Positions 20,220 to 54,398 of a stretch of DNA of 64,000 bases are shown here, piece after piece. Location: assembly GCA_965112155.1 (NCBI GenBank), contig OZ218099.1. One strand, given 5' to 3'. The DNA is from Podarcis liolepis. Lineage: Eukaryota. Each line of letters starts with the position of its first letter. The stretch's first letter is position 1. The notes beneath the pieces are model-generated. The model did not search any database, was not told the origin of the DNA, and saw only the letters and a program-made list of their open reading frames with translations. Both the position numbers and the translations under genes were made by a program.

Positions 20220-20251
<32 letters not shown>

Positions 20252-20375
20252 GGTGTCAGCAGCAGCCTCTGCTCCCCAAGCACAGAGCTCTCAGCCGCAG
20301 GCTTCTCAGTCCATGCTGGACCAACAGAGAGAGATGCTCAGAAAACGAGAGCAGGAGCGAAGGCGCAGGGAGGCA
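20114..20375 (+). CDS. BRD4: BRD4 exon (poly-Gln, start of C-terminal motif)
   Basis: [25 protein letters not shown]11..[22 protein letters not shown]; donor GCA|gtaagt. Confidence 0.95.
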
Positions 20376-21694
20376 GTAAGTGAGGGAGAAAGGGATTATT
20401 GGGGTTTGAATGAGAAGCTATTTCGACAACAAGCTAAACAACAGAGGCTCACTTTGCTGGTATAATTTTTAATTTGCTGACTACGTGCCAGAGATCCTCA
20501 GTCTTTTTCACAGGATTCTCACGTTAAGCCTACAATCCCATGTACATGTACCTATGTGTTAAGTCCCACTGAATTGTGGAACTTCTGAGTAAAGTAAACA
20601 TGTTTAGGGTTGTGACTGTAAATCAGGTGTCCCTCCTAGAAATAGTTGTTCCATATTCATTGACAAAGCTCTCAGATTTCCCTCTCTCTAAATTTCTACA
20701 TTTTTCTTTTCTTTGTTTCTTACTGACCTTCTATTTAATATACTCTTTTCATGGAAGTTCCCAGAGTCTGCATTTTACAAGTGCACAGATACTGTCCACA
20801 CATGGTCATTGCTCCATGTGCACATAATGCTAAGTCATGGTTTGTAGTAATGGCTTCAGCAAATGCTGAGTTATCTCACAGATGAACAAACAAGACATGT
20901 CTTGTTTCTTGAAAGCTTGGTTTATGTTCTAAATGCCACTCTTGCCTTGTGCCTTTGTAGCTTGATGAGCATCTGAAGTGCAGTGGCCTAACAAACCAGA
21001 GCTAAGCAGAGTTGTTGGGTTTTGATATAACCCCTATCTGTAGTTAAAACAAGACATGTTCATAAGCCAACAACAACTTATGGTTTCACATTGTGGGTGG
21101 CATTAAGTTTTTCTCAAAGTAGACCCTTTAAAATTAATACGCCTAATTTAGCCATGTTAATTAATTTTAGTGAGTCTACTCAGACTAACCAAACTATGGC
21201 TTGGTGTTATGTGTGAACCGGGCCACTGAGGTTTAATCAGATTTGTCTTCAGCACAAGGGGGACCTTTATTCCACCTAAGCTTTCATACACACAACTTGC
21301 TCTTCTTAGGGCCAAGCCATAGGTGTCTACTTTGAAGTTAAATTATACTTCCTTCTTGTCCCACTTTCGCATCCTTCATTCTCTCTCTTCCTCTCCCTCT
21401 CCCATACCAACACACATTTCTCAACATCATGTTCCCTGACACTGTCACTCTATCCTGTTTCTTTTATAAGGCAGTGGTGTAATAGATAACAGAAAAGAAA
21501 GCACCATCTGCCGGAGCCCTTTTAATGTTGTCTGGTATGATTTCCTTAGACCTGCCAAACATACTGTGCTATTCACTAGGTTTTCTGGAGTCAAGAACTC
21601 AGCCTGCCCCTTTATGGAAGAGACAGTGCGCCTGGCCAAGCAGGCCAGTGATTGCCACTGCCTGGTGGGTTCTGCAGCAGAAAGCCCCCTTTTC

Positions 21695-33779: not shown

Positions 33780-34800
33780 TGCTTGGAGTCTTAACAACGG
33801 GGTCGGTTACTCCGCTCTATAGGAACGACCATGGGTCGGCGTTGAGGTGGAACCATGGCCGTAGCCAGGATTTTTGTTAGGGGGCAGAACATCAAATCTG
33901 TATGGATTATGTGGGGCTTGACTACGCCCACGGTTTGAATCCGAGTGGGGCCCTTCAGCTAAATGAAAGAAAAGGCCGTTTGTGCGTCGGGCGGGGTGCC
34001 ACTTCCCTTCCTTGAATCCCTGCGAGGTTCCTGGGAGTTAAACGGGCCTGAACAGATGGGGGTTTTCTTGAGGAAAAAGAACTCGGCCAATACCCGGCTC
34101 TTTCTTGCCAGCCACCATGCTAGAAACGGAGTCTCCTTCGGGCGAGGTCAGGCACCTCTCGGCGGGCTCGGAGTCAAAGCGGCGCCCTGAGCTCCGCCAG
34201 GCGAGCGGGGAGCTGCCGGGAGCAACAACAACCGCCTCTCAAACCCCGAGCGGGCTTTGCCCTCGTGGTCGCTCTGACGGGGCGGAGCTCTGCGCCCGAC
34301 GCTGCATTGAGGAGAGCTCGAGGCCCCGAGGCGTGAGGCACTCCAACTCCTTCGCCTTCCCCGCCCGCGGCTGCAGAGCTTCTTCCCACTAGCGCAGAGA
34401 TAGCGGCCTTCGCAGGGGGGAGGAGCTGGAGGGGCGGCTTTTTAAACGGAGGCAGGAGCGGCAAGGTGAGAGTGTAGGTAGGAGACCGATGGGGGAGCAG
34501 GCAGAGCTACTTACGGGGCTCACCTTCTCGGGGAGCTGAATTCGAGGCACCGTCTACCAAAGGGTTGCTTGGCGCCAGAATTTGAGTGGCTTTCCTCCCT
34601 TACTGCAGGTAGGAAAAGTGGCAAGACGGGTTAGGATTAGCACTCTTCTGACTGGCAGGAGGAATTGCATGGACTCCGCCACCTGAGTCAGCGGGGCGAT
34701 CATCCGACGTGGGTTTGGGGAAGATTGCCGACGGGAGACTTTCTGTGGAATTTCCATGGAAACAGCCTCCTAGCCTTTGGCCCCAAGGCAGGACTCCGTT
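33780..34800 (+). promoter_or_regulatory. CpG-island promoter of EPHX3 copy A
   Basis: GC/CpG-rich block ~0.6-1.6 kb upstream of the ATG; GGGCGG boxes at ~34279 and ~34432; TTTTTAAA at 34439-34446; homologous to the copy B promoter. Confidence 0.75.
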
Positions 34801-35252
34801 TGTAACAAGCCTGGCAGGAAGATAAGATAGCGACCTCTCTTATCCAGCCTTGCTGGAAGGAGGCGCTGTCGTTAACTATGTCTACTGAGAAGGAAGTCCT
34901 GTTGATTTCACTTGGGTTGGCCCCCAGGTATATGGGGTTAGGATTGCAGGCTTAGTGAACTTCGTTTGTTGTGCCAGGGGATTCCCCCCGCCCTCCCCGC
35001 TATGCCACCTGTAGCTTTTGTGCGAGATTCTGCCCTGCTCATTATAGGTCGCATCCCGAGAGAGATTTTGCATCTTGTTGCTTCAAAGGGAAGAACTCGA
35101 TTTCTGACGTCGACCTAGTAATGTCTGCCTAGGCACCCTGTACCATCCTTGAAACTTGAATAATGTTTTGTTAGTTACTTAAACTGTCATGTGTGTGTTT
35201 GAGTGTGTGGCCTAAAGACATTCTCAATAGCATCTAAAAAAAGAATCCTCCT

Positions 35253-35380
35253 ATAAGAAACTACCTTATACCAAATCAAGCCACTGATTGGCATCTTGTC
35301 CCAACTGGAGATGCCAGGCATTGAACCTGAGACCCTTGACATACAAAGCATGTTATCTACCCCTGAGCTGTGGCCTCTCT
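35253..35380 (-). mobile_element. Old tRNA-derived SINE (antisense), abutting the first coding-exon acceptor of EPHX3 copy A
   Basis: Reverse complement ggccacagctcaggggtagataacatgctttgtatg..caggttcaatgcctggcatctcc is a tRNA-like head with A and B boxes; degenerate homolog at ~46650-46715. Confidence 0.65.
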
Positions 35381-35406
35381 CTTACAGCGCTGGACAACAG
35401 GAGGGG

Positions 35407-35649
35407 ATGGCATCTCTCACACATTTCTTACTGGTCCCCACACGCCTGATGCTGAAGGTCTTTAATGTTATGTCCTGGCTGTCTATGTATAGTGCCGGTT
35501 GCCTTGCTGCTGTCTTCTACTGTTGGTGGGCCCTATGGCAGGTGGTGTCTACGGGCCCTTTCCAGGTGCTCCGCAAGAAGAGGCGGGGGACTCCACCAAG
35601 ATGCCTCACTGATGCCTCGCATGGGGAGCATGGCTTTGTCACGCTAAAA
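35407..35649 (+). CDS. EPHX3: EPHX3 copy A coding exon 1
   Basis: MASLTHFLLVPTRLMLK...PPRCLTDASHGEHGFVTLK (cf. human ..CLSDPSLGEHGFLNLK); acceptor at 35387, ATG in gggATGG context, donor AAA|gtgagt. Confidence 0.9.
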
Positions 35650-35792
35650 GTGAGTACAGTGGCAGGAAAGTGGGGGGGGGGGAGAGGCCATAGTCAGGTG
35701 CTCCTAGCCACAGTCAGGTGCTCACGGACAGCAGCTGAAGCAGGATGTGAAGGCAGGATTCTGGGCTGCTGGTGTATTTGAGAGACTGGGAG

Positions 35793-35990
35793 TAACATAG
35801 GAAACAGCCTATTTCCAGGTCAAACTATTTGACTCTCTAGCTTGATGTTTTCAATGGTGACCGACAGCTGTTCTTCAAAGTCTTAGGGGCAAAGAGTCTT
35901 TCTCATCAGCTGCCTCTTAACAGGAGATGTCACAGATTGTGAACCTGTCACTCTATGCATGCAAAACTCTTGAGCTATTGTCACTGAGCT
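35793..35990 (-). mobile_element. Old tRNA-derived SINE (antisense, same family) in EPHX3 copy A intron
   Basis: aacataggaa..cagcctat..gtcaaactat..ggagatg..gaacctg..atgcatgcaaa..cactgagct; homolog at ~47087-47258 in copy B. Confidence 0.55.
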
Positions 35991-36038
35991 CTTGTCTGTG
36001 TGTAACTGTCCTATTTCTCTGTCCTTTGGGGGCTCAAG

Positions 36039-36124
36039 AACTCAGGGCTGCGTCTCCACTATGTTGCTGCTGGCGAGGAAGGAGCCCAGCTGATGCTTTT
36101 TTTGCATGGTTTTCCCCAGAACTG
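36039..36124 (+). CDS. EPHX3: EPHX3 copy A coding exon 2
   Basis: [29 protein letters not shown]; AAG acceptor, donor TG|gtaagt. Confidence 0.92.
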
Positions 36125-36759
36125 GTAAGTGTCGCTGTGCTGTGTGGTAGTTAGAAGAAGTGCAGTGTCTGGAGCTGATATCAATTTACTGCAGGTGTGG
36201 CTCATGCAGGAAGTCAGCCCACAGATCTGTTGGCCAATGTGTTAGAGGAGTTTACTGCAAAGTTAAGGAGAAGGTATTGAACAAAAGGATTAACTTCCCT
36301 AAGGAAATGACCTAGAGGAGATGATGCTACTCAGCTACATGCTATCAAGTTTCTATGATGCACAGTGAATGACCATCGGGTGTTCACCATTAGTATTGCT
36401 ATTACCATGCCTTTCTTCCTGACAAGACTAAAGGTGGCTTTCGGATTAAAAACAAGAATAGCTAAAAACATAGACAAAAGCTATCATTAAAAACAATTAA
36501 ATCTTAATAGAATTAAAACTATATACAGATATAAAATCTATTTAAACCATATGAATAAGTACAATAAAAACAACACCAGTCCTTTCATTAAAAGCAGTCA
36601 ATTCCCAAAAGCCTGATGGAACAGATGAACAACAAGGGGTGAGCCATTATTCAAAACATATATATACAACAAATGGAGAGGCAAAAACTATAAAAGCTGC
36701 AGAGCAGGGAAGCTCTCCTCTCTACTTAATCCCATTGTGATTTGGCTGTATTTCAACAG

Positions 36760-36935
36760 GTTTGCATGGCGCCATCAATTGCAGGAGTTTAAGCGGGCAT
36801 TTAAGGTGGTGGCCCTCGATTTGCGGGGCTATGGCTTTTCCGACGCACCAGCTGGTTCTGAGCACTATCAGAGGGAAGCTCTGCTGGCAGATGTACATGG
36901 TGTCATTGACGCTCTGAGCCCCAGTGAGAAGAATG
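36760..36935 (+). CDS. EPHX3: EPHX3 copy A coding exon 3
   Basis: [30 protein letters not shown]...ALSPSEKN; donor ATG|gtgaga. Confidence 0.92.
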
Positions 36936-37169
36936 GTGAGAGTGAAAATGGTTGTTTTGGAGGAAGGGTCCGGTTTGCCACTGCAGTGGCTTGGCTACTG
37001 CCAATGGGAGGAGAGGGCCATGCATTCAACATACTTAAGCTTTCAAGTGTTACATTGATGCTTAATGGGGTTTCCTTGAAATGAATCAGTGTTTGGGTTG
37101 GGGAATTGTCAAGCAGGCTGATACTTGTCCACATTGTCCCTGTTCTGATGCCTTCTGTTTGTCTTTTAG

Positions 37170-37298
37170 AGATTTCTAAGTGCATCCTGGTGGGACATGA
37201 CTGGGGTGGATCCATAGCTTCTGAGTTTGCTGCCTGTTACCCCAATTTGGTAGAGAAGCTTATTATTATGAATGCAGTTCAACCACATGTCTTAGCAG
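37170..37298 (+). CDS. EPHX3: EPHX3 copy A coding exon 4 (nucleophile Asp)
   Basis: [43 protein letters not shown]; Asp codon GAC at 37199-37201. Confidence 0.93.
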
Positions 37299-37905
37299 GT
37301 GAGTTGTGCTATCGGGATTTGGTACTCACTACGATTGTGTGCAGCTTTTGGCATTCACTAATTAATTCTAAGCAGGATTGGAAAAGGGAGAGAGGAGCCT
37401 GAATCTGCCAGGGACTAGTCCCTGCTGCACAGTTAAATGGTCACTGTGACTGCATTGCCCTTAGGATGCAGAGCCTGCATAAGCCATCACTGTTACGCTA
37501 CAGCTCTTTTTGGAGGAAGAAGGGAGGTTGTCTGATCTATCTAAGTGCCTGACACCAACACACCAACACGGCTTATGATTAGATGAAAGCCTTGTACTAG
37601 GAGTACATTTAAAAACACAGCCACCCAGCTCCCCCCCCCCCACTGCTTGGACTGCAAGTTGATCCAGATGTTAAAGGGAAATAAATGAGAGCAACCCCAG
37701 TTGAGCCCTCTATTTTGAAGATAGTTTTCTGGTTGTGGTGATTTTGTTTCTTTTTTTTTATAAAGTATTTTTATTTCAGTAATGCACAAAATAGATCCAA
37801 AAGCAAATAAAAAGAACAAAGGGCCATATATTGGTTCTCTTGATGAGTAGTTCTGGTGATATTTAATGTGTGGCAGGGCAGCTTATTTTCCCTTCCACCT
37901 TGCAG

Positions 37906-38009
37906 AATATTTTTCACGATATCCCACCCAGCTGCTGCGCTCCAACTACATGTTCCTGTTCCAGCTGCCAAAGCTGCCAGAGCTCCTGTGGTCCTTAGAT
38001 GACTTCTAT
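37906..38009 (+). CDS. EPHX3: EPHX3 copy A coding exon 5 (first lid Tyr)
   Basis: EYFSRYPTQLLRSNYMFLFQLPKLPELLWSLDDFY; Tyr TAC at 37947-37949. Confidence 0.93.
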
Positions 38010-39138
38010 GTGAGTGCAGGGTGGGGAGTTTGCCTCACCATTCATGCCTTCTTGCATTAGGAATATAAATACAGCAAATCTCTTTTCCAAGCTGTCTGTG
38101 TAACTTTGTGAAGCCAAAGCGCTTTATTCTCTGCTGGTGACTGTTCATTCACTTCGCTCAATGCTGAGCTACAAATCTTAAATGTGTTTCATGGGCATAT
38201 CCCAAACCCTTCTGCCAGGCTGCTTTCAGCTCTGCGTGAAGGGTGATTCTCTCTGCTTTGCTTTGTAAGAAGCATAACCCTGTCTCTTCTGCCCCCTCCA
38301 CCCCAGCCTCACTCCATATAGAGAGTGCCTTGTGTTTAAAGCTCACCTGTAATAAATCTGAAAGAGTGGTGTTCCAGTTTTCAAACATTCTTTGGAACCC
38401 GAACTTCCAACGCAGCTTCTGCAGCTTCCAATTGAGTGCAGGAAGCTCCTGCAGCCATTCGGAAGCCGTGCCTTGGTTTTAGAACATTTGGAAGTCAAAT
38501 GGACTTCTGGAATGGATTACATTCTAGAACCAAGATACAACTGTATTTACGCTAAACAAGGGGCAGTCATAACCTATTCAGACATTGCATACTATGAACT
38601 AGTGGGATATGTGAGCAGGCACAAGTACATTTGCTTTGATACCCTCTCTGGATTATTTGGAGGGTGCCAATCTGTGACAGGGAGGCTGCTCTTTATGTAG
38701 GCTCCTCTTGTGATGTAGAGCCCTGGAAAATCTACATTGCATGGGAGGCCTACCTGAGTCAAGTAGAAAAGTCTCCCTGCTGCAGATGGAGCTTGTGGAC
38801 ATAGGTAGGAGCTAGTGCATTTGTCTTCACTCATGTGAAGATCAGTAGCAGATAACCTTTGTGTGGATAGTGGAGGAAGGCAGGCTGGGAAAAGCTTTAA
38901 ATATTACTGAGCTGATCTATCAGGTAAAGACATATGGGCAGGGACAGTTTTTTGTTTTTAAAAGGAAGCAACACTGTTTACTCCTTTGCCCTGCCCAAGG
39001 TGGTTTAAGCAAATATTTTTTACAAAGCTTTCTAGTAGCATGAGCTGCCTCTGCCTTATTGAGGAGACTGTATTGTACAGGACGAGGAGGTGTGCATTTA
39101 ATTAGCCTCTACATGCTGCTGTGTCTTTTTCTCTACAG

Positions 39139-39278
39139 CTAATAAAGTCTGTTATGACTAGCAAGAAGACGGGAGACCAGAATCATTTGACAGAGGAGGA
39201 GTTGGAGGCTTACCTGTATGGCCTTTCAAAGGACAGGGGTCTAGAACCACCCATGAATTACTACAGGAACATGTCCAC
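39139..39278 (+). CDS. EPHX3: EPHX3 copy A coding exon 6 (second lid Tyr)
   Basis: LIKSVMTSKKTGDQNHLTEEELEAYLYGLSKDRGLEPPMNYYRNMST; canonical splice sites. Confidence 0.92.
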
Positions 39279-39705
39279 GTGAGAGCCCATTTATTCCCAG
39301 CTTTGATAATGGGTGGGATTGGCATTTTTTCGCAGAGGAAGAAACTGCTTGGCAGCAGTAGCCTTCTGCTCCTAATAATTGGAGGGCACCAAATTCTTTG
39401 TTGGATCATGTGGTGCTGAGGGGCAAAACACTCTTCCTCCTCCACAAATCTGTGTTTAAATTTCAGGAAAGGGGATGAGAAAATCTTGTGACCATTCTGA
39501 GATACTTTAATTTCTAAAAGAATGTTCATTTATAGAATTGGAATTAAAGTGTGGGTGTGCTGCCTCCCGATTATGTCATGGCTGCAGTGCATGAGCCTCC
39601 CTAGGGTGGAAAGCGACACAACTCTGATAAGTGGCACAAAATGGTGAACTGATTTATGTCCAATGCCAATTTGCAGATTTCTTTTCTGTGTATCTTCTCC
39701 TACAG

Positions 39706-39925
39706 TTGGGTTCGTGCAAAGTGCAAGGATATTGTGGTGCCCACCCTGCTGATCTGGGGAGAAAAGGATGTATTCTTGGAAAAAGGGCTTGTCATACCCA
39801 TGGAGCAGAAGGTGTGCAAGAACATCAAGGTGCAGCTCATCCCTGAAGCCGGCCACTGGGTCAGTGAGGAGCAACCAAAGAAAGTCAATCAACTGATGTG
39901 GGCTTTCCTCCTTCAGAGAGACTGA
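39706..39925 (+). CDS. EPHX3: EPHX3 copy A coding exon 7 (catalytic Asp and His, stop)
   Basis: WVRAKCKDIVVPTLLIWGEKDVFLE...IPEAGHWVSEEQPKKVNQLMWAFLLQRD*. Confidence 0.93.
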
Positions 39926-40130
39926 GATGGAAAGAGGCAGTGACTGCTCTGTGCACTACAAGCATTCCTACCACCCAGCATGCAGGAAATTACAAGAACA
40001 GCCATTTGACCTGACACTGGAGATCTGGTCCTTCTCTGTGCCCAGTGGAATGTTTCTATCCTATATTGGAACATGAGTCACATGCAACTTTTAACTGGTT
40101 TTGCTGCAAGTCTGTGTTCCGTTGCACTAC

Positions 40131-40136
40131 AATAAA
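40131..40136 (+). promoter_or_regulatory. EPHX3 copy A polyadenylation signal
   Basis: AATAAA ~205 nt after the stop; same position in copy B (52550-52555). Confidence 0.7.
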
Positions 40137-41527
40137 AATGATTTGCTTCAGGGTTTCTGATATGGGCTTCCTGATGGTGAAACTGCACAGCAGTTGCATT
40201 CAACAGGTCTTCCAGCTCCCTCCCTCTGTAGTATACAGGCATTAATACTCACAGAAGAGCACAGCTTTTCCTTCTGTATTTTTTTTTTGTTGGGTGTGCC
40301 TTAGCACAGCAGAATCTGGAGCGAAGCTATGTTCCCTGTTGCTGTTTCACACCCATTTTCAATGGCATCTTACTACCCTGGCAAACTACACAGGAAAGCG
40401 ACCCTTGGCATGGATCATATTGAAATAAATGTTTTCAGCCTTCTTACTTCACTGTCTACCTGGAATGAGTTAATGACACATTAGGAGGAAGCTGCTTCTT
40501 AACATGTAATATTACCTGGGAACATGACTGTGCCTGAGAACATCTTGGTAACGCTTGGGGGAATTAGTTGGATGTCTTAAGAAGAGGCTTGAATTAATCC
40601 ACTGCTCATGCCAAAGAGAGGGTGCAGTGATTGATCTCATAGTGTGTGCCTCATCCTGCATGTGGTGGACTGGAGAAACGACAAGAAAACCCCCAGTGGG
40701 TGTGTACATATGTGCAAAAGGAACATATATAGGTGACTTACAGGAACACAACTGGGTGGAAACTTCACATCTGCCAGGACTAAAGCTAGTCATTGCTCTG
40801 GGAGAGAATGTCTGCCCATGAGGCAGCCTCCATAATAAAGAGGAGTTTTGATACTACAGGTATTGTTCCCCAGTGTTGTGGACCTGATGCTCCAAATGGT
40901 GGCAGTCTGAAGTTGGTACAAAGCAGATGTGCCCTTTGGGCATATTCTCTAGAATTACAAGGTAAAGGTACAAGAGTGTCTAGTGTGAATTGTGCCGCCA
41001 GCTATGCTGCTGCTGTGCAGAGGCAGGAATTGAGTCAGGGATGGAGTGGCAGTTCCTAATACTACTCTGGGCCAAATTACCTGTGATGTTTTGTGTTTAA
41101 ACAAGTGTGCTTGACTTGCCTATTTTTATTTTGGAGGAAAAGCAGCCACAAGGCCCTAATCTGTGATATGCTTCCAATCCATTTGAGTTACCAGGACTGG
41201 TTTTCTGCTGAACATTACTCCCGCCAAGCTGCTCTGTGCCCTTGAAAGTTGCATGTAGTTTTGACCCTCGGCGGACATCTGATAGCTCAGAAGTACCAGG
41301 ATCTGAGGGCCAGGTTAGGCTCAAGGCAACCTGCGGCCAAAGCACAATCAGCAAGTTCTAGCGGATGAGGAAAGGCTTCTGCCTTTCCACCTGTCTGTTT
41401 CCGCAGACCAAGCTTCAAGACTTCTTGAAGACAACAGGCTGTCTTGTTTGACCTTCAGCTTTCTTTAACTAGGGTTTATGTTGGCATTCAATTGCTGTGG
41501 TTAATGCTGCATATTATCAAATAAATA

Positions 41528-41741
41528 CAGTGGTACCTCGGGTTATAGACGCTTCAGGTTACAGACTCCGCTAACCCAGAAATAGTACCTGGGTTAAGAA
41601 CTTTGCTTCAGGATGAGAACAGAAATTGCGTGGTGGCAGCAGGAGGCCCCATTAGCGAAAGTGGTACCTCAGGTTAAGAATGGTTTCAGGTTAAGAATGG
41701 ACCTCCAGAACGAATTAAGTGCTTAACCCGAGGTACCACTG
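41528..41741 (+). mobile_element. Tigger/pogo-like MITE, family 1
   Basis: TIRs cagtggtacctcgggtta/taacccgaggtaccactg; TA flanks. Confidence 0.9.
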
Positions 41742-43152
41742 TAATGATAATATGGTCTAGCATCATCATTATATAGCTCCCAGAAACAACTGCATTGTTC
41801 TTATATTGACAGGTCTGCTACCCTGGGCTACTTTGGAGAAAGGGTGGAATATAAATGTGTAACTTAAATATATAAGTAAATAAATATATAAATAACATAA
41901 ACAAAACATGGGGCACAGTGGCGCTAATGTTAACACACATTTTAAAATGTAGAGCAGAGCATCTTTTGCTTCAGCTTAGGGTATAATGTATTAGCAAATA
42001 TGAAACTCGTGCTATTTTCCATTCCAGAATCACTATTTTCTGCCAGGCATGTGATCAGAGGTGCTAATGAATCATCTGCAGTCAAGCTAGGAGGCAAGTG
42101 GTTGCTTCAAGCGAGCACATGTGTATGTGTCTAAACCTGGAACATGTAAAGTTAAATGTCAAGGAGAGGAGTTCTTGATTAGCATTTTTCCCAGACAAGC
42201 TTTTTAATTTTCTATGCCAGGTAATTATTTTTTAAATGGGGGAGCATTTAATTCAAGAACCATATATATCAGGCCTTGGAATCTTGATGAAAATATTGCT
42301 GTCTTGCAGCTCCACTACCAAAATCTATCTCCTTTATGGAAATCTGTAAGGGCAGCATTGAGGAAGGGGCAGTTAAGGTGGGTAGGACACAAAGATGGTT
42401 AAGTTATTGTAGCGTTAGAAGCAGAGGAAATCCCACGATTTTTATACCCCTCTCTGGCATTAAAAATACAATGAGAATAAAGTAACAAAACATTTGCTTC
42501 CCCTTCCATGACACTCAAATCACACTGCCTGTCATTGTTACTAGATCTCCTTGTGTACCAGTTCACACATGCCCACGATCCGTATCTCACACATATATTT
42601 ACAGAAAAACCTGTAATGGGGAAAGAGCAATATCATCTTTTGGAATCTTTAGTGGAGACTGTTGTGAGCCACAGACTTTCTTGCAATGGACCTGATTATC
42701 CAGCTTAAGTTTGGGGGAAATTGAAAAAAACACACACAATAGCATAGCTCACTTGGGGAAACTAGCAATAACCACACCAATGCTACAATCAGAGTATGTA
42801 TGAACAAAATACATTAAGGCTCATGACAGCAACTGCTGGCAAAGTTATACAGTGCATGCTTGGTTTCACTCTGAAGCTAGAATACAATCAGTACAGTACT
42901 GTACTTCAATGTTTGCAGGGGGAGCCACCTTGTGGATTCTGTGTGCAACACCTACTCCTTTAGTTCTGAAAGTGACATTAAAGCGAATGGGGGAAATTAA
43001 ATTTCCCAGGTAGGGACAGGGGACTGATCAGGGCCTCATGTCATTTTGCCTTCAGAAAGGGGTGGTGGTGCTAGTGGGACAGGGAAAAGCACAAAAGGTG
43101 CCCAAGAGTAGTGCAGCTCAGTCGATGCCCCTTCCAACTTAACCCTCTAGGT

Positions 43153-44773: not shown

Positions 44774-44868
44774 GTGGGTTCGAGCCCCACATTGGGCAAA
44801 ATATTCCTGCATGGCGGGGTGTGTGTGGACTAGATGACCCTCGTGGTCCCTTCCATCTCTATGATTCT
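44774..44868 (+). mobile_element. 5'-truncated tRNA/CR1-tailed SINE (Squam2-like)
   Basis: B box gggttcgagcccc, then ggactagatgaccctcgtggtcccttcca.ctctatgattct (CR1-type tail). Confidence 0.75.
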
Positions 44869-44869
44869 T

Positions 44870-45660
44870 GCCGCCGTGCCTGACTTGTAGGAGGCGGGGT
44901 CTCCTTTGGGTGAGATCCGGCCCTGCGCCCGGACCCTCCAGGCCTGGCTCCCTGGGCGCTCGCTCTCTCGGCGCGCCCTCGAGATCAAGCAGGCGAGCGG
45001 GCAGGGAGCAGTTGTGGACGAGAGCCGCCCCCGTCCCTGAGCGGGCTCAGCGCAGGCTTCTCATCCCTCTGCCGGAAAGAGGCCTGGTCGGCCGAAACCC
45101 ATTCGCCTTCCTGGTCGCTCCGACGGGCGGAGCTCTGCGCCCGAAGCAGCCGCGGAAGGAGCAGGAGGCCCCGGGAGGCGGGGAAGGAAGCTCTGCTGCT
45201 CCCTCGCCTTGCCGCCGCGTCTTCCCTTGGCGCGCGGGGAGGAGCTGGAGGGGCGGCGCTGCCTTTATAAAACGGAAGCCGGAGCGAGTGGGTCGCGGGA
45301 GCAGGGGGAGATTGAACGCGCCCGGGCGGCGTCGAGTGACTCCCCGCTCCTTGAGGTACCGAGAGAGAGAGTTTCGGTTGCCCGCGCCACTGACTATCTC
45401 AGCTTGGGAGCCCCACCGCTTTATCCGAAGGCAGCCAAGAACCCAGCCGTGTTAGCAGGCGAGCACCCCCGCTTGGGTTTGCTGGATACCGAGACCTTGC
45501 TCGGTTGAGTTCCTATAGACACGCGTCGTGCCTACCGTGCAGGACTCCCGTTTGTAACGCGGCTGAGTCCGAGTTTCTGGTCTTCTGAGAAAGGACTTGC
45601 AACCGGTAGTGTCGTGGCAGATCCCGAAGTGCAAGGTCCTCATAACAGCCGCGCCCCTTC
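44870..45660 (+). promoter_or_regulatory. CpG-island promoter of EPHX3 copy B with TATA box
   Basis: Very CpG-rich; GC box at ~45250 followed by TATAAAA at 45266-45272; candidate non-coding exon 1 donor GAG|gtaccg near 45356. Confidence 0.8.
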
Positions 45661-46740
45661 TAAGATTTTACAGTAGCTAAAAAATTATACAAGAATCATT
45701 ATTAGGGTGCGTTGTAACAATGAATGCAGATCCCAACGTGTTGCCTTTCAGTTAGCTTCTATTTTATGTGCACATACATGGGCAAATGTTTTGGAATGCA
45801 GTTTAAAGTGGGTTCAGTATCCCATGTGTGCATAATTGTCACATTTGCACAATGTTGTCCTCATCCAAGTGGCAACCTGCACTCCCCCCCCCCCCATTTA
45901 GTTAAGATTTGTCCATTCTGTGGATAATGCAGTAAGGGTGGGGATCCAACATAGACCTGTATGATCCCAGCCATAGGTGTACTGAAGCACATTGTGTGGG
46001 CATTTTTAAAAAGGTGTGTAGTAACTTTTGCTTGGGTGCCATCTATCATAGCGCCCTCCCTTTACTTCAGTTAGTGAGAGGTGCTTCTTAGTGGGCTGCT
46101 GGTGGGGCTGTTTGGGAACACACTTCTTTTTACATTTTTCCAACAGTGTTTTGTGCAAGTCTGGTATATCCAAAAGCTTGTGTCTAAAAATAAGCAAATA
46201 CTTGCATGTGCAAATATATTCCATCAAGCACTGCCCACTAGTGGTGATGGTAAATGCCGAGATGGAGTTCACTTAAAAGTGCTCTTGTATGGACAAAAGT
46301 GCACAGGGGAAAAATAGGATCTGTTAATTCCATGCATACATTCACACTCTGGTGTATCCTCAGCCTTAGAGCAAATCAGACCATTGGTTTATCTGCCTCA
46401 GGACTGACTACTGCAGCAAGTAACTTTTCTTAGGCTGTATAACAGTGGTGCATACAGATGAGGGAAAAGGTTGCATTCTAACCATGCAAAAGTAAGAAGT
46501 TTCTACAGACAATTCTACACACCAAGAAAAGTGGCAGTGGCTCAGGAAAGTCTCACAGGGCTTTTGCCCAGTGGACCTGAGGTTCCCTACCCCTGACCTA
46601 CATTAACTAGAAGCAGCTCTTGGGCAGGGTTCTTGCCCAGCTCTACTTGTAAATGCCAGGCATTGAATTTGGGGTGCAAAGCATGTTCTCTTTCTTCTGA
46701 ACTGCAGCCTCTCTCTTGCAGCCCCAAACAACAGGAGGGG

Positions 46741-46983
46741 ATGGCCTCTCTCTATCGCCTCTTACTGATCCCCACACGACTGATGCTGAAGGTCTCTAAT
46801 GCCGTGTCCTGGTTGGTTGTGTACAGTGCCGCTTCCCTTGCTGCTGCCTTCTACTGTTGGTGGGCCCTGTCGCTAGTGGTGTCTAGGGGTCCTTTCCAGG
46901 TGCTGCGCAAGAAGAGACGGGAGACTCCACCAAGATGCCTCACTGATGCCTCGCATGGGGAGCACGGCTTTGTGACACTAAAA
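46741..46983 (+). CDS. EPHX3: EPHX3 copy B coding exon 1
   Basis: MASLYRLLLIPTRLMLK...HGEHGFVTLK; acceptor at 46721; donor AAA|gtgagt. Confidence 0.9.
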
Positions 46984-47305
46984 GTGAGTACAGTGGAGGG
47001 GAATGGGGAGGCTTCCAGCCATAGTCAGGTGCTCACAGACAGCTGCTGAAGGCAGGATCCTGGTCATGTACTGTACAGGTTGGGAGGAACATAGGAAGCT
47101 GCTTATTGCCAGGTCAAACTATTTGTCCCTCTACCCTGATATTTTCAAAGGTGACTGGTAGCTGCTCTTCAAAGTCTTAGATGCAAAGTGTCTTTTCCCT
47201 CAGCTGTCTCTTAACAGGAAATGTCACATATTGTGAACCTGTCACTATCACTGAGCCCTTGTCTGTGTGTAACTTTCCTATTTCTCTGTCTTTTGGGGTA
47301 TCAAG

Positions 47306-47391
47306 AATTCAGGGCTGCGTCTCCATTATGTTGCTGCTGGCAAGGAAGGAGCTCAGCTGATGCTTTTCTTGCATGGATTTCCCCAGAACTG
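47306..47391 (+). CDS. EPHX3: EPHX3 copy B coding exon 2
   Basis: [29 protein letters not shown]; donor TG|gtaagc. Confidence 0.92.
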
Positions 47392-48108
47392 GTAAGCGTC
47401 GCTGTTCTGTGCGGCAGTAGGAAGAAGTGCAATGCCTGGAGCTGATATCAATTTACTCCAGGTATGGTTCATGCAGGAAGTGACAGGCTACAGATCTGTT
47501 GGCCAACGTGTCACGTAATACCTCTCTGGCCAGCAAATTCCTGCAAAGTTGGGGCAAAGGTCTTAGACAGAAATATTAACTTCCCGAAGGAAGGGACTTG
47601 ATTGCTGCTATCCTCTCATGGTGAATGACCATAAGGCCTTCATCATTAAATTGTAATTAATACAACTTTTTTTTAGTGTTGACCTTATGCTGCATAGAAT
47701 CAGAAGCAACATGATTTACAGTAGACTTACAGTTTTAACAAATGTAAAAGAGGTCATGATAAATTAAGCAAAAGCTTGGTGGGGGTTTCTTGATTTTTAG
47801 AGGGTGAGGAAGCGAAACGAGGTGAATACTTATATTTAATTAAAATACCTTTAAATTGTCTTTCATCTAAAGATCCTAGGGTAGTGTACAATAAGCATTA
47901 ATAAAATCATTTGTACACAATATAGAAATACAGTTCAGACCAGCAACCTTTGTAACAAATAATAAACAAACCAAGCAGCAAAAACTGTAGAAGTTACAGA
48001 GCAGGACTAAAGCAACACAACAAAAGTAGGCACTGATGTCCTGGAATTTTCAGTTAGGGAAGCCCTCCTCTCTGCTTATCTCTTTATGGTTTGGATGTAT
48101 TTCTACAG

Positions 48109-48284
48109 GTTTGCATGGCGCCATCAATTGCAGGAATTTAAGTGGGCCTATAAGGTGGTGGCCCTTGATTTGCGGGGCTATGGCTTTTCCGACGCACCAG
48201 CTGGATGTGAGCACTATCAGAGGGATGCTCTGCTGGCAGATGTACATGATGTCATTGAAGCTCTGAGCCCCAATAAGAAGAATG
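48109..48284 (+). CDS. EPHX3: EPHX3 copy B coding exon 3
   Basis: [58 protein letters not shown]. Confidence 0.92.
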
Positions 48285-48510
48285 GTGAGAGTGAAAATGG
48301 TTGTTTTGGAGGAAGGGTCTGGCTTGCCATTGCAGTGGCTTGCCTTCTAGCAATGGGAGGAAAATGCCCTCTGCTCAGTCTTGCTAAGCTTTCAGAAGTG
48401 TTGCATGGGTGCTGAATGGAGCATTGTGGGGATGAACTGGTATGTGGGTTTGGGAAATTATCTAGCAGGCTTGTAGCTTCCCATAGGCAGATACTTACTT
48501 GTCCATGATA

Positions 48511-48618
48511 GGTTGTGTCCAACTCAAAGTAGACTCACTGAACTTATGAACCTAAGTTACTCATGTCCATGAACTTCACTTGGTCTATTTTGAGTATGAT
48601 AAGCACTGAATACAGCCC
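48511..48618. mobile_element. Old palindromic MITE in EPHX3 copy B intron 3
   Basis: ggttgtgtcca..tgaatacagccc ends with inner ctcaaagtagac/gtctattttgag symmetry; absent from the matching copy A intron. Confidence 0.6.
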
Positions 48619-48657
48619 ATTGTCTCTGTTTCATTGCTTTCTATTTGTTCTTTATAG

Positions 48658-48786
48658 AGATTCCTAAGTGCATCCTGGTGGGGCATAACTGGGGAGGAAT
48701 CATAGCTTTTGCATTTGCTGCCAGTTACCCCAATATGCTGGAGAAGCTGATTGTCATGGATGCTGTTCAACCACATGTTTTATTAG
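48658..48786 (+). CDS. EPHX3: EPHX3 copy B coding exon 4 (Asn at nucleophile position)
   Basis: EIPKCILVGHNWGGIIAFAFAASYPNMLEKLIVMDAVQPHVLL; AAC at 48687-48689; acceptor tttatag, donor TAG|gtaagt. Not in the supplied ORF track. Confidence 0.92.
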
Positions 48787-49193
48787 GTAAGTCTTGTACT
48801 GCCCCATGATTTTAGTTCTCACCATGGCTATTGGCATTTTCTAGCTCTAAATAGGATTGTGGATGGAAGAGAGAAGCCTGCAGAACTGTAAAAGGCCACC
48901 ATGACTGCATTGCCCTTAGGATGCAGAGTCAGGGTGGGCCATCATTTCACACCACAGATCTTTTGGGAGGAAGAGGGAAGGAAGTTGTCTGCTTTGCTCA
49001 AGTTCCCAACCCCAACACACAAGCATTGCTTGTGAATAAATGGGAGCCTGGCAGCAGGGCTTTTTTTAAAAAAAAAAAACCCCGATCCTCCCTGTCCTCA
49101 TTGCTTGGACTGGAAGTTGACGCAGATGTTAGGGGAAAATAAGAAGCAACTCCAGTTGACATCTTTCATTTTATTTTGAAGATTGGTTTCTGA

Positions 49194-49312
49194 GAGTGGC
49201 ATTCAACTAAGTTTTACATAGAGTGCACCTGTTGAAATGAATGGACCTAACTTATTCACATTCACTAATTTCAGTGGGTTTGCTCTAACTGAAACATAGT
49301 TGAATACCACCC
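49194..49312. mobile_element. Old palindromic MITE in EPHX3 copy B intron 4
   Basis: gtggcattcaacta..tagttgaataccac inverted ends. Confidence 0.6.
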
Positions 49313-49389
49313 AGTATCTGGTGGCATTTCATGTGTGGAGAAATTGGCACTGCCCTGACACACAACTTACTTTCCCTTCAACCTTGCAG

Positions 49390-49493
49390 AATATTTTCCA
49401 CGACATCCCACCCAGCTGCTTCGATCCAACCACATGTTTCTGTTCCAGCTCCCAAAGCTACCAGAGTTCCTGTGGTCCTTAAATGACTTCTAC
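49390..49493 (+). CDS. EPHX3: EPHX3 copy B coding exon 5 (His at first lid-Tyr position)
   Basis: EYFPRHPTQLLRSNHMFLFQLPKLPEFLWSLNDFY; CAC at 49431-49433. Confidence 0.92.
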
Positions 49494-50657
49494 GTGAGTT
49501 GAGGGAATGGTTGGGGAGTGGGTTCAAAAGCTCATGTTCTGTCATGCAGATTAACCAAAGGGTCCAATCATTTTATTCTGCTCTGGGGTCTGATGGTTCT
49601 CTTCCACAATCCTAAAATACAGTTCTCCACTGTGTTTTATGTATTCATCCCGAATTTCTCTGTCAGTCTCCTTTCAGCTCTGGGTGCAGGGTTATTATTA
49701 CTATTATTTCTAAAATTTCTATACTGCCCTTCATCCAAGGTCATGCACTGGGCTCTCTGTCTTGGTTCATGAAATGCATAATCCTGTGTCTTCTCCCACC
49801 TGCCTACCTTTAGATACACATGGCCTGGCTTTTAAAGTTTATTTCTAAGGTATTGGCAGTGCTTCCCCCCCCCCCCAAATTAGTGTTTAGGGGTACTCTC
49901 ATTTTGACTCAAGAAAATCACTATTTTATAATTCAGATTAGAAGAAATAAATACAGTAAATGGACAAAAGTGCAAAGATTCACAAAATGTTTGGGGTATG
50001 CATACCCCTGCGTCCCCCCAGAAGAAAAGCACTGGGTGAGATGTGGTGAGATTATTACCTAGAGTCTGGGATGAAAAGGCCATGGCAAGCTATGACATGT
50101 TCTAGTGCTGCCAGAGGGAGGGAGGACTATGACCTTCTTATTCCTTCACTTCCCCATCCATTCTCCCCCCCTGCCGCTTGGCATACGAAAACGTAGCATA
50201 CAAAGTTTTTTAGTCAGTGTGGAGATGAGTGCTGGGAAAGGCTTAAACTGTAGTCCAAAACACAGTCCTGCATCCTGTTCTCACAGTGACCAGCCACGTG
50301 CCTATGCAAAGCCCCAAAGCAGAACCTAAGCACAATAGCACTCTCCCCTCCTGCAGTTTCCAGCATCTGGCATCCAGAGGCAGGCTTCCTCCAGCTGTGG
50401 AGGCAGAGCATAGCCATAATGGCTCCTGGCCATTCGAAAGCCTTCCCCTCAATGTCAATGCATATGTCTAATCCTCTTTTAGGATCAGGGCCAGCACAAA
50501 GGGAAAGGGGGGAAAAGAGACAATGCTGCTTCCTCCTTTTCCCAGCAAAGACTAAGGGAGAGTAAATATCTAAAAATGGCATGAGCTGCCTCTGGGTCAG
50601 ATAATGGGGCGTGCATTTAATCAGCTTCCACATGGTGCTGTGTCTTTTTTTCTACAG

Positions 50658-50806
50658 CTAATAAAATTCATTATGACTGGCAAGAAGACAGGAGCCCAGA
50701 ACCCAGCACGCCGTTTGACAGATGAGGAGCTAGAGGCTTACCTGTACAGCCTGTCAGAGTGTGGAGGTTTAACACCAGTCCTGAATTACTACAGGAACCT
50801 GTCCAC
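50658..50806 (+). CDS. EPHX3: EPHX3 copy B coding exon 6
   Basis: LIKFIMTGKKTGAQNPARRLTDEELEAYLYSLSECGGLTPVLNYYRNLST; 9 nt longer than copy A, in frame. Confidence 0.92.
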
Positions 50807-51415
50807 GTGAGAACCCATTCCTCCCCAGATTTGCTCACATGTGGTATTGGCACCATATGCTTTTCCTCAGTTGTGGTGCACCAGTACATTCAGGCTTTCC
50901 CCTTGGGGGTGGGTGGGACTTGTTTGGCAGCAAGAATTTTCTAGTCATAATATTTGGAGAGGTCACAACATTCTTCACTGGATTATGGGATGCAGGGAAC
51001 AAAACACTCTTCCTCCCTAAAATATATTTCTAAATGGTGGTAAAAGGGGATGAGGAAATCCTGTGACTGTTCTGAAGGGGATTCTGAGATATTTTAACTT
51101 ATGGTGAAATGGGAAAGGTTGGGTTCTAGAATTGGAACTGAAGTGTGTGCATGCTGTCTTTCTGGATTTCTATTGATTTTTCTCATCACTGCTGTGCATG
51201 AGGCCTGCTAGTGTGGAAAGTGGTACGGTTGGCCGCAACTTGGGTAAGTGGCCAAAGTGGTGAGTTGCCTGCTGTCCAGTGCAGATTCGCAGGTGTCTTC
51301 TCTGTGGCTGCATTCAGATGTGGGGTTTTTTTTTTTTGGTTTTTTTTTGTTGGTTATAATGCTAGTGCTTCTCTCCTAGTTGCTAATGATCCTTTTACAC
51401 TGCAGTATCTCTGTT

Positions 51416-51779
51416 GGGACGCGGGTGGCGCTGTGGGTAAAACCTCAGTGCCTAGGACTTGCCGATCGTATGGTTGGCGGTTCGAATCCCCGCGGCGGGG
51501 TGAGCTCCCGTCTTTCGGTCCCAGCTCCTGCCCACCTAGCAGTTCGAAAGCACCCTAAGTGCAACTAGATAAATAGGTACCGCTTTATAGCGGGAAGGTA
51601 AACGGCGTTTCCATGTGCTGCGCTGGTGCTGGCTCGCTAGAGCAGCTTCGTCACGCTGGCCACGTGACCCGGAAGTGTCTCCAGATAGCGCTGGCCCCCG
51701 GCCTCTTAAGTGAGATGGGCACACGACCCTAGAGTCGGACACGACTGGCCCGTACAGGCAGGGGTACCTTTACCTTTAC
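51416..51779 (+). mobile_element. Sauria SINE (Squam1), full length
   Basis: gggacgcgggtggcgctgtggg..ggttcgaatccc..ggggtacctttacctttac; perfect 10-bp TSD tatctctgtt (51406-51415 / 51780-51789). Confidence 0.93.
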
Positions 51780-52132
51780 TATCTCTGTTGCATTATGTAA
51801 CTGTGGCTTTTTGAGTGATATGGCACCATGCCACGCTACATTTTAAATGGTGTGGGAAAACTGTATGCCAGGATAGCACCCCAAATCTTATCAATGCAAA
51901 ACTCCTAGTGATTTTCTCAGTTAACGGGGTTGCAAACAGGTTTTGGGTTTTTTGGAAAACATTAACATGAAAATGAGCTCTAAACTTGTGCTAGAGTGCA
52001 CTAGATGTCCAGCAGTAGCTTTCATGTCATGTGGAAGATCACAAAACACACACAAATAAACAGGCAAGTAAACATTGTGAAGGCTGAACAAAGTGCCATC
52101 TGAATGTGGCCTGTGTATCTATATCCCTACAG

Positions 52133-52352
52133 TTGGGTTCCTGCAAAGTACAAGGATATTCTGGTGCCCACCCTGCTGATCTGGGGAGGAAAGGATGGAT
52201 TCCTGGAACAAGGGCTTATCCCATGTATTGAGCAGAATATGCGGAAGAGCATCAAGGTGCAGCTCATCCCTGAAGCCAGCCACTGGGTTTGTGAGGAGCA
52301 ACCTGAAAAAGTCAATCAACTGATGTGGGCTTTCCTCCATAAGAGAGACTGA
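52133..52352 (+). CDS. EPHX3: EPHX3 copy B coding exon 7
   Basis: WVPAKYKDILVPTLLIWGGKDGFLE...IPEASHWVCEEQPEKVNQLMWAFLHKRD*. Confidence 0.93.
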
Positions 52353-52549
52353 AATGGAAAGAGGGAGTAACTGCATTCTGCACTGCAAGCATCCCTCCCA
52401 CCCAGGAAATGACAACAGCAGGCATTTGACCTGATACTGGAGGGCTGATCCTACCCTGTGTCCTGTGGAATGTTTCTACACCATATTGGAACATGAGTTC
52501 CATGCAGCCTTTAACTGGTTTTGCTGCAAGTCTGTGTTCTTTGCACTAC

Positions 52550-52555
52550 AATAAA
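52550..52555 (+). promoter_or_regulatory. EPHX3 copy B polyadenylation signal
   Basis: AATAAA in a 3'UTR homologous to that of copy A. Confidence 0.7.
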
Positions 52556-53114
52556 AAGGATTTGATTCAGGGTTTTTGATACGGGCTTCCTGATGGTGAA
52601 TCTGCACAGCTGTTGCATTCAGCAAAAAATCTTCTATCTCACTCCCTCTGTAGCATGGCGGCATGAATACTCATGGAAGAGCACAGCTTTTCCTTCTATA
52701 TCGCTTTTTGTTGAGTGTGCCTTAGCACAGCAGAATCCAGAACTAAGCTGTGTTTCCTGTTGCTGTTTCACACCCATTTTCACTGGCATCTTACTACCTT
52801 GGCAAATGGTACTACACAGGAAAGCGACCCTTGGCATGGATCACATTGAAATGTTTTCAGCCTTCTTACTTTACTATCTACCTGGAATGAGTTAGACACA
52901 TTAGGAGGAAGCTGCTTCTTAACATGTGATATTGCCTGGGAGTGTGACTCTCCCTGCGAAAGCATGTCAGTTGGTTCATGAAGCAGCCTCCATGGTAAAG
53001 AGGGGTTTTGATACTGTTCCGTTATTGCTCATCCCATTGTTTTGGATCTGACGATGCTCCAAACGCCTGCAGTCTGTGAAAGTAGGTAGAAAGTACAGTT
53101 GTTCTTTGGGTATA

Positions 53115-53323
53115 CAGTGGTACCTCGGGTTACATACGCTTTAGGTTACAGACTCTGCTAACCCAGAAATAGTACCTTGGGTTAAGAATTTTGCTTCAAG
53201 ATGAGAACAGAAATCGTGCTCTGGCGGCGTGGCAGCAGCAGGAGGCCCCATTAGCTAAAGTGTTGCTTCAGGTTAAGAACGGACCTCCGGAACGAATTAA
53301 GTACTTAATCCGAGGTACCACTG
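53115..53323 (+). mobile_element. Tigger/pogo-like MITE, family 1
   Basis: Same TIRs and body; TA flanks. Confidence 0.9.
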
Positions 53324-54398
53324 TATTACATAATATTGCAAGTTAAAGATGGAAGAGGGTTTCTAGTGTGCTGCTGTTGTGCAGCTGCTGTGCAGAAGTG
53401 GGAAATGTTTCGGGGATGGAGTGGCAGGAGCTAGTATTACTCAGGGTCAAACTACCTGTGATGTTAGCTGTGTGTTTAAACAAGTGTTGATTTATCTTTG
53501 CTCTATCTGATCACCTTTATCTTTGAGGAAAAAGCCACAGGGCTCAATCTGGAACATCCTTCTGCATCACAGCCTGCCCCTGGTTTTCTGCTGAACATTG
53601 CTGTTTGTCCTTGAAAGGATCATGTAGATTTGGCCCTTGGCAAACTTCTAATAGTCCAGGAGGACCAGGATCTGAGTGTCTAATAAACAAACCAATGTGG
53701 GTTTTCCTTGGGCCAGTAATTCAGCTAGATTGGGGTTCAGCTGGAGCCACCATAGTGCACCACCTCAATGCCTTGGCTAGCCTAGCTCTTACTCCTTTGT
53801 GCTTTTTCACAAACCATTGTGTAAAGGCTGCCATAATTGCTTGGACTAATATTAGGTGAGGGCATATACTGAGCTGATTTGCTTCTCCAATGTCTGTCCC
53901 TTTCAGGCTAACATTCTCTTGTTTCCATCCACCCAATTTTCTTTTTAAGTTCAGGGTTAGTTTAGTACCATATCAGAATATGTACTTGCGTCCCTAAAAC
54001 AGAGGTAATAACATATTAGTATAAATCAGGGAGCCTGGAAATGGTGTGCCAATATTTCAGGATTCCGGGCAGCTTTTTTACTGAGCACAAACTATAGCTG
54101 GTTAGTCTTAGATGTGACAACAGCTGTCTTCATTGTGAAATGTCACATCAGCTGTCATTTTTCTCTTCCAGTCAAGCATGTTTCTTCCTCTGTTTCTTGG
54201 TGAGGAAACCATGTGATGCCTCACAGACATTTAAACGAGGGTCGGAGAACCTGTGTTTTTCTAGATTTTATTTGATTACAACTCTTCTCATCCCTGACCA
54301 TTGGCCACGTTGGCTTGGGCTGAAACTGGGTGCCACAGCATCCTCATCTCTGAACTAAAAAAAAAAAATCACCTTGCTTATATGTCCCTTTATATGTA

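Follow-up and report, generated by a model that had tools for sequence, protein, structure and literature searches.

Asparagine at the nucleophile position of a duplicated EPHX3 gene in lacertid lizards, and its recurrence in snake EPHX3

EPHX3 (also ABHD9 or EH3) is a membrane-anchored alpha/beta-fold epoxide hydrolase that acts on epoxides of fatty acids and of ceramide-linoleate, and in mammals it belongs to the ceramide-linoleate pathway of the skin barrier. Epoxyoctadecenoic acids (EpOMEs) and epoxy-alcohol linoleates are among the substrates of the mammalian enzyme, which supports this barrier (PMC7948417, PMC13162623). Cif of Pseudomonas aeruginosa opens the epoxide ring with the pair His177/Tyr239 and has Asp129 as nucleophile, as cited in PMC12918957; the work of Bahl and Madden 2012, cited there, defines the class by this His/Tyr pair in its title. 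The gene described here, designated copy B, was found in a stretch of 64,000 nucleotides from the lizard Podarcis liolepis (assembly GCA_965112155.1, contig OZ218099.1; this whole stretch is called the window). It is coded on the + strand at 46741-52352 and has a tandem twin, copy A (35407-39925, + strand), with the same exon structure. At three sites copy A has Asp, Tyr, and Asn, and copy B has Asn, His, and Asp.

A preliminary description of this DNA presented copy B as an EPHX3 paralogue with a rewired active site. On the sequences compared here, that active site seems less exotic than was stated, and the recurrent replacement of the nucleophile Asp by Asn in squamate EPHX3 is the more interesting result. 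A conserved and expressed vertebrate EPHX3 without the textbook nucleophile is seen in the lizard paralogue and in most snakes, where it appears to be the sole EPHX3; two birds apparently have one as well.

Copy B and its active site

The window was compared exon by exon, and the structure model, the PDB search, and the tree were made with database orthologs such as P0334, the copy B of Podarcis muralis. Copy B has seven coding exons, separated by six introns that are all of the GT..AG type, and the coding sequence of 1107 nt comprises 368 codons and a TGA stop. The lesion-free frame of 368 amino acids with canonical splicing, as previously described, is thus confirmed. The ATG at 46741 lies in an exon at 46721-46983 (coding part 46741-46983), which encodes the N-terminal membrane-anchor helix and where RNA contigs start at 46721 or 46727. 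Coding exon 2 (47306-47391) carries the oxyanion-hole motif HGFP at 47372-47383, coding exon 3 spans 48109-48284, and coding exon 4 (48658-48786) holds the nucleophile elbow GHNWGG and strand beta6. The lid begins in coding exon 5 (49390-49493), and the second lid Tyr is encoded in coding exon 6 (50658-50806) within NYYRN (TAC TAC, 50787-50792). On the last coding exon (52133-52352) are the acid Asp317 (52194-52196, in WGGKD), the base His346 (52281-52283, in SHW), and the stop codon at 52350-52352, beyond which the 3' untranslated region (UTR) extends.

The nucleophile codon of copy B is AAC (Asn179, 48687-48689, in GHNWGG), as against GAC at 37199-37201 in copy A, and it aligns with the Asp of VGHDWGG in the structures 5ng7 and 4o08. 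The first lid codon is CAC (His226, 49431-49433, in RSNHMF), as against TAC at 37947-37949, and aligns with the Tyr of 'kswyvfffq' in 5ng7. The third changed codon, GAT (Asp203, 48759-48761), stands directly after strand beta6, 24 residues after the nucleophile position, where copy A has AAT at 37271-37273. Both AAC and CAC are read directly in the window, in agreement with the preliminary description, and the motifs HGFP, NYYRN, WGGKD, and SHW, which it gave as kept, were all located there. In terms of the features of an epoxide hydrolase, copy B lacks the Asp nucleophile in the Sm-X-Nu-X-Sm-Sm elbow and the full pair of lid Tyr, the first being His226 and the second present in NYYRN; the HGXP motif, the His base, and its acidic partner are all present. 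Among epoxide hydrolases, enzymes with a single lid Tyr or with a His/Tyr pair are found. The two copies are 79.5% identical in amino acids, close to the divergence of about 20% estimated earlier. Summed over the exons, synonymous divergence (dS) between them is 0.26 and nonsynonymous divergence (dN) 0.107, giving a dN/dS of 0.41.

The AlphaFold2 model of P0334 has a mean predicted local distance difference test score of 92.1 and a predicted template modelling score of 0.91. It consists of an N-terminal helix (residues 2-49), an alpha/beta core, and a helical lid. In this model Asn179 comes right after strand 173-178 and Asp203 right after strand 196-202, His226 lies in lid helix 225-229, Asp317 follows strand 309-314, and His346 follows strand 336-341. 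The core and lid are those of an alpha/beta-hydrolase, and the precomputed Pfam assignments are PF00561/PF12697. CH65-EH (5ng7/8agn) was recognized by Foldseek as the best match, with a template modelling score of 0.90 on the target; 4io0 was also matched. The best structure and sequence matches are thus solved epoxide hydrolases, namely CH65-EH, Bacillus megaterium epoxide hydrolase, and soluble epoxide hydrolase, to whose nucleophile Asp and lid Tyr residues Asn179 and His226 align, respectively.

Relatives were collected by a search with exon 7, by further searches, and from the cluster listing. Both copies are annotated in Podarcis raffonei, P. lilfordi, P. muralis, Lacerta agilis, and Zootoca vivipara. 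All five copy-B orthologs have Asn (GHNWGG) together with the lid His, and all five copy-A orthologs have Asp together with Tyr. Copy B of the window differs from the copy-B proteins of other Podarcis by 4-9 residues. The Zootoca proteins P0329 and P0335, both copy-B isoforms, carry the name 'epoxide hydrolase 4' in their source annotation despite their place in the EPHX3 copy-B cluster.

Spliced RNA agrees with the predicted gene. Record 12 of run X15, a spliced RNA contig of a related species, joins exons 4, 5, and 6 exactly at the predicted borders. It covers 48657-48784 without any difference in exon 4, and in exon 5 it differs at 49421 and 49457 only; the AAC and CAC codons are therefore present in spliced RNA of a related species. 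The codons are shown in RNA for run X15, and runs X1 and X19 do not contradict them. In record 19 of run X19, from another related species, exons 3, 4, and 6 are contiguous on one contig that joins exon 3 to exon 4, and the exon 5 part is absent from the listed matches. Stranded raw RNA reads of run X23 cover exons only, at a depth of 1.6-7.2 as against 0 in introns, and the first mate is always on the minus strand, which corresponds to RNA of the + strand. Transcription and splicing of copy B are accordingly seen in two or more related species. An assembly error or a private allele, raised earlier as a possible source of the two codons, is excluded by the same Asn and His in five other lacertids and by the spliced RNA of X15. 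Editing of adenosine to inosine, by which AAC would be read as GAC, was also considered and left no sign, as exon 4 is identical in the X15 contig; since rare variants are lost from contigs and the raw reads are only about 1.6 deep, low-level editing could escape.

The read comparison gives the best-supported differences only, and 81 further differences lie outside them. Four differences of run X1 in exon 3 (48136, 48143, 48148, and 48150) were rejected as copy-B variation; their letters equal those of copy A, and they were taken as copy-A sequence. With these four removed, the listed exonic differences to related species are seven synonymous and two nonsynonymous, a small and incomplete sample.

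In a tree of 46 sauropsid EPHX3 proteins, built by a careful maximum-likelihood analysis, the clades of copy A and copy B are sisters (100/99), the amphisbaenian Rhineura stands outside them (99/92), and all are inside squamate EPHX3. The tree places the duplication in the lacertid lineage, after the split from amphisbaenians. The stem of copy B is 0.101 long and that of copy A 0.123, and the end branches are shorter in copy B. Rates of the two copies were compared at the protein level. In 10/10 species pairs, amino-acid differences between copy-B proteins were equal to or fewer than those between copy-A proteins (4 in B and 14 in A for P. raffonei and P. muralis, 18 in each for P. muralis and Zootoca). 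With Rhineura as outgroup, 24-27 unique changes fell on the copy-B lineage and 31-35 on the copy-A lineage. Copy B is, on these protein comparisons, the slower-changing copy, and the purifying selection acting on it appears no weaker than that on copy A.

Asn179, Asp203, and His226 occur in all six lacertids, so these changes most likely arose on the stem of copy B. The beta6 site is Asn in copy A, in Rhineura, and in all lepidosaur and turtle outgroups, and Asp203 is derived in the six lacertid copy-B sequences. Copy B is a real and probably functional EPHX3 paralogue, intact in six lacertids, and transcribed and spliced as predicted.

Asn at the nucleophile position in snakes and birds, and its possible meaning

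Among snakes, GHNWGA with Asn was found in 21/21 sequences outside Thamnophis and Erythrolamprus, from about 17 species of pythons, vipers, elapids, and colubrids (P0165, P0351, P0166, P0167, P0354-P0366, P0370, and P0007). Asp occurs only in Thamnophis (two species) and Erythrolamprus (two near-identical genes), the Asp-type proteins being P0168, P0368, P0169, and P0371. The full-length snake sequences of the Asn type keep HGFP, NYYRN, WGxxD, and SHW, and every full-length Asn-type sequence retains HGFP, His178, Trp180, Asp317, and His346. A search with the rattlesnake protein revealed no further snake EPHX3 cluster and no second, Asp-type EPHX3 in any snake species. The stem branch of snakes is long (0.46), and the Asp/Asn state requires at least five changes on the tree of 46 proteins. 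The snake replacement took place on the snake stem, independently of copy B, and Thamnophis and Erythrolamprus represent a return to Asp. No literature linking EPHX3 with snakes or squamates was found in the searchable library.

Single sequences of two birds, hoatzin (P0191) and Rostratula (P0222), also read Asn in GHNWGG, and the single EPHX3 sequence of the side-necked turtle Pelusios (P0164) reads GHGWGS, with Gly at the nucleophile position.

The two other changed sites were followed in an alignment of the 220 proteins gathered in homology searches. The lid His occurs together with an Asp nucleophile in EPHX3 of the fishes Rhinichthys (P0218), Sardina (P0299), and Denticeps (P0308), and in EPHX4 of the gar Atractosteus (P0288). 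Phe stands at the first lid site, again with Asp as nucleophile, in alligator (P0181), the parrot Melopsittacus (P0207), and Polypterus (P0302). A coupling of the loss of the lid Tyr to Asn was considered and rejected, as fish combine Asp with His, and alligator and parrot combine Asp with Phe. A coupled swap of Asn179 and Asp203 was not supported as a rule: birds have Asp both at beta6 and as nucleophile, and snakes have Asn at both positions. Since snakes carry Asn179 with the beta6 Asn and the lid Tyr, the three changes of copy B are, on this alignment, not a coupled set. The preliminary description spoke of two catalytic residues lost. It stands that the encoded Asp and Tyr are replaced, but the premise of loss is weakened by the recurrence of Asn in snakes and by the occurrence of the lid His beside Asp.

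The reading favoured here, with a rough probability of 0.45, is that copy B still works through the hydrolase machinery, Asn179 being converted to Asp and a His/Tyr epoxide hydrolase resulting. Asn179 would occupy the nucleophile elbow, and the carbonyl of its carboxamide would lie in the oxyanion hole formed by HGFP and the backbone after the nucleophile. In the normal cycle, water activated by His346-Asp317 cleaves the alkyl-enzyme ester at the side-chain carbonyl of Asp; in copy B the same activated water could attack the carboxamide of Asn and yield Asp and ammonia. Copy B would thus be a latent, slowly self-maturing enzyme, which after maturation could open fatty-acid or ceramide epoxides with the His226/Tyr pair, as Cif does, and its substrate preference, pH dependence, or timing would probably be unlike that of copy A. 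This reading builds on the toggling between Asp and Asn with a return to Asp, on Asn in the apparently only EPHX3 of most snakes, and on the retention of the other catalytic residues. As the oxyanion hole, His346, and Asp317 are intact, the parts for hydrolysis of a carbonyl at the nucleophile position seem all to be present. Repeated toggling would be expected if Asn were nearly equivalent to Asp in function, and the flips back to Asp are explained more easily by an Asn that function tolerates than by a dead site. Two engineered proteins reportedly behave in the same manner: the Asp-to-Asn mutant D333N of mouse soluble epoxide hydrolase is reported to revert by itself to Asp (Pinot et al., 1995, J Biol Chem), and so is D124N of the haloalkane dehalogenase DhlA (Pries et al., 1994, Biochemistry).

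Several points weigh against self-maturation. Asp110Asn of fluoroacetate dehalogenase was, by the titles of its PDB entries (3r3w, 3r40, 5t4t, and 5k3b), crystallised as a stable mutant with and without substrate, and conversion is thus not general in the fold. An Asn followed by Trp deamidates only slowly by itself, so that conversion would need catalysis by the active site. Three Asn-type lineages have another residue in place of the first lid Tyr, copy B among them; the two in snakes, Crotalus horridus with His and Notechis with Asn, could mean relaxed selection on catalysis. Asn at the nucleophile position occurs only in sauropsids among the 220 aligned proteins, isoforms and bacterial homologs included, and would be expected more often if it were fully neutral. 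The retention of the other catalytic residues in snakes argues weakly, as the rough probability for four sites is about 0.04 and these residues possibly have structural roles.

The main rival explanation, less probable than self-maturation, is that Asn179 stays as it is, no alkyl-enzyme forms, and copy B holds epoxy-fatty acids or epoxy-ceramides in its preserved pocket, perhaps as a carrier, sensor, or buffer, or shields substrates from copy A. The encoded nucleophile is indeed absent, and the Asn mutants of fluoroacetate dehalogenase, going by the same PDB titles, serve as stable substrate traps. Copy B is moreover expressed and under purifying selection, the neighbouring copy A could cover catalysis, the first lid Tyr varies in three Asn-type lineages, and the long snake stem fits a change of function at the point where Asn arose. 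Such a binder is harder to reconcile with the snakes, however, where no second EPHX3 cluster was found for the Asn type and hence no catalytic twin as backup, and where the return in Thamnophis and Erythrolamprus would have to turn a binder back into an enzyme. All full-length Asn-type sequences retain His346, Asp317, HGFP, and the second Tyr, and in comparison with copy A no burst of change is seen in copy B (stems of 0.101 in B and 0.123 in A). A changed chemistry is improbable. It would have Asn179, Asp203, and His226 rewired, with His346 polarised by Asp203 and/or Asp317 for a one-step attack by water, or would act on another substrate class. It draws on the three changes of the active-site region that are derived on the copy-B stem and present in all six lacertids, on the position of Asp203, which immediately follows strand beta6 and comes 24 residues after the nucleophile position, and on spacings to His and Tyr that nearly equal those given for Cif. 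In Cif (Glu153) and in class-II haloalkane dehalogenases the catalytic acid stands at the spot of Asp203. Yet Asp is usual at the beta6 site in bird EPHX3 with the Asp nucleophile, snakes carry Asn179 with the beta6 Asn and the lid Tyr, and no epoxide hydrolase of the alpha/beta fold is known to us that dispenses with the covalent step at Asp.

Early and slow decay of a redundant copy, whose intact frame would reflect too little time, is very improbable. The Lacertini are closely related and their copy-B orthologs differ by 3-20 residues, so that missing stop codons are weak evidence when taken alone, and the total dN/dS of 0.41 between the copies also speaks for this reading. Against it, fewer changes have accumulated in copy B than in copy A, whether counted from the duplication or inside the crown group; copy B is transcribed and spliced in two or more related species, and 7/9 of the listed exonic differences are synonymous. 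The duplication is also old (non-coding identity of 65-85%, dS of 0.26), and six species have nevertheless kept an intact frame, intact splice sites, and the other catalytic residues. Constraint on copy B at least equal to that on copy A disfavours decay. The earlier judgement that simple decay fits less well is upheld by a gene that is intact in six lacertids, transcribed, correctly spliced, and changing no faster than copy A.

Self-maturation of Asn179 may extend beyond copy B. In this broader form, to which a slightly lower probability is given, Asn would be a 'safety catch' by which the EPHX3 of most snakes, the lacertid copy B, and that of a few birds are made latent and slowly self-hydrolysed to Asp. 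The delay could then time the hydrolysis of lipid epoxides in epidermal differentiation or shedding, and the flips between Asp and Asn would be its evolutionary trace. If true, a natural self-activation of Asn to Asp would be a new way to make a latent enzyme in this fold. A long-lived binder of epoxy lipids, if that were true instead, would be a new class of pseudoenzyme in lipid signalling, and most snakes would then be without EPHX3 catalysis. The lacertid pair is a natural experiment in either case, with Asp/Tyr/Asn in copy A and Asn/His/Asp in copy B of one genome; Thamnophis and Erythrolamprus are a second.

Duplicated unit, transcript ends, and neighbouring sequence

When each copy-B exon was compared with the window in tblastn, exactly one other copy, copy A, was found. 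Similarity between the copies extends over 34256-41753 and 45102-53676; besides the entire gene it takes in CpG-rich sequence upstream and, on the 3' side, at least about 1.4 kb of flank. Identity is 65-85% in non-coding sequence and 65-78% in introns. The unit of tandem duplication, which comprises promoter, gene, and 3' flank, is estimated from this alignment at about 11.4 kb, and it is judged old from its non-coding identity and from the dS of 0.26. In the last exon together with the first approximately 600 bases of the 3' UTR, the copies share 85.5% identity (39686-40540 and 52111-52960), which points to a conserved 3' UTR or to past gene conversion. Exon 6 of copy A (39139-39276) is without three codons, Pro-Ala-Arg in copy B (50658-50804), and these codons are ancestral, as they are present in Rhineura and other squamates.

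A CpG island at 44800-45700 on the + strand, with GC content of 0.54-0.69 and a CpG observed/expected ratio of 0.73-1.02, probably holds the promoter of copy B and its non-coding 5' exon sequence. Within it, 45102-45286 is homologous to 34256-34460 upstream of copy A. The CpG/TATA promoter of the preliminary description does not lie at the exon with the ATG: the CpG observed/expected ratio is only 0.0-0.24 across 46000-46900, there is no TATA-like hexamer in 46001-46741, and the island lies at about 44.8-45.7 kb. In record 15 of the X19 RNA contigs, 104 extra letters at the 5' end are spliced onto the acceptor at 46721 and do not come from 46550-46720, so copy B has at least one upstream non-coding exon. 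The seven exons described earlier are therefore correct for the coding part, and the whole gene has eight or more. At the other end, AATAAA exists at 52550, as was claimed for the polyadenylation signal, but RNA contigs (record 20 of X19 and record 14 of X15) reach at least 1.7 kb past 52549, and the main polyadenylation site of copy B thus probably lies farther downstream.

Two repeats were observed in the introns of copy B, a transfer RNA-derived element resembling a short interspersed nuclear element in intron 6 (51410-51780) and a second repeat in intron 5 (49750-50150). Both have very high depth in every DNA and RNA run and many chimeric joints.

Upstream of both copies, open reading frames (ORFs) on the + strand were identified at 740-1132 (ET-domain-like), 14399-14785, 15683-16219, and 20082-20465, with a Gln/Pro-rich tail in 14399-16219. 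By eye, these are presumably the 3' exons of BRD4. BRD4 and EPHX3 are adjacent in mammals, and copy B is positioned at the EPHX3 locus, beside the BRD4-like ORFs of the same strand. Between these ORFs and copy A, a reverse-transcriptase-like ORF on the minus strand (28285-28710) looks like a fragment of a long interspersed nuclear element.

Comparison with known hydrolases

Copy B resembles EPHX3 in its orthologous locus, its place in the squamate EPHX3 clade, the anchor helix, the lid, HGFP, the second Tyr, the acid, and the base. It differs in having Asn for the Asp nucleophile, His for the first Tyr, and Asp for Asn after beta6, and in being one of two tandem copies, so far seen only in lacertids. 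The EPHX3 of snakes (P0165 of Python, P0167 of Crotalus, P0364 of Naja, and P0358 of Pantherophis) shares with it the replacement of Asp by Asn, the retention of the other motifs, and conservation within the clade. Unlike copy B, the snake proteins have Asn by an independent origin, and only one EPHX3 kind was found per species, without an Asp-type twin; they also keep Asn after beta6 and the first lid Tyr, except in C. horridus and Notechis.

Cif is an alpha/beta-fold epoxide hydrolase with His first and Tyr second at ring opening. From the nucleophile position to His and Tyr the spacing is 47 and 111-112 in copy B (His226, Tyr290/291), and 48 and 110 in Cif by the residues given in PMC12918957. 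Cif and P0334 were matched in HMMER over residues 83-366 with an E value of 5e-17, and the equivalence of the His residues is by spacing only. The differences are that Cif has the nucleophile Asp129 where copy B has Asn179, and that it is a secreted bacterial protein and a distant homolog.

The engineered Asp-to-Asn mutants of alpha/beta-fold hydrolases carry the same substitution at the same structural position as copy B. They are laboratory proteins with two opposite reported behaviours, whereas copy B is natural and its change has been kept by selection.

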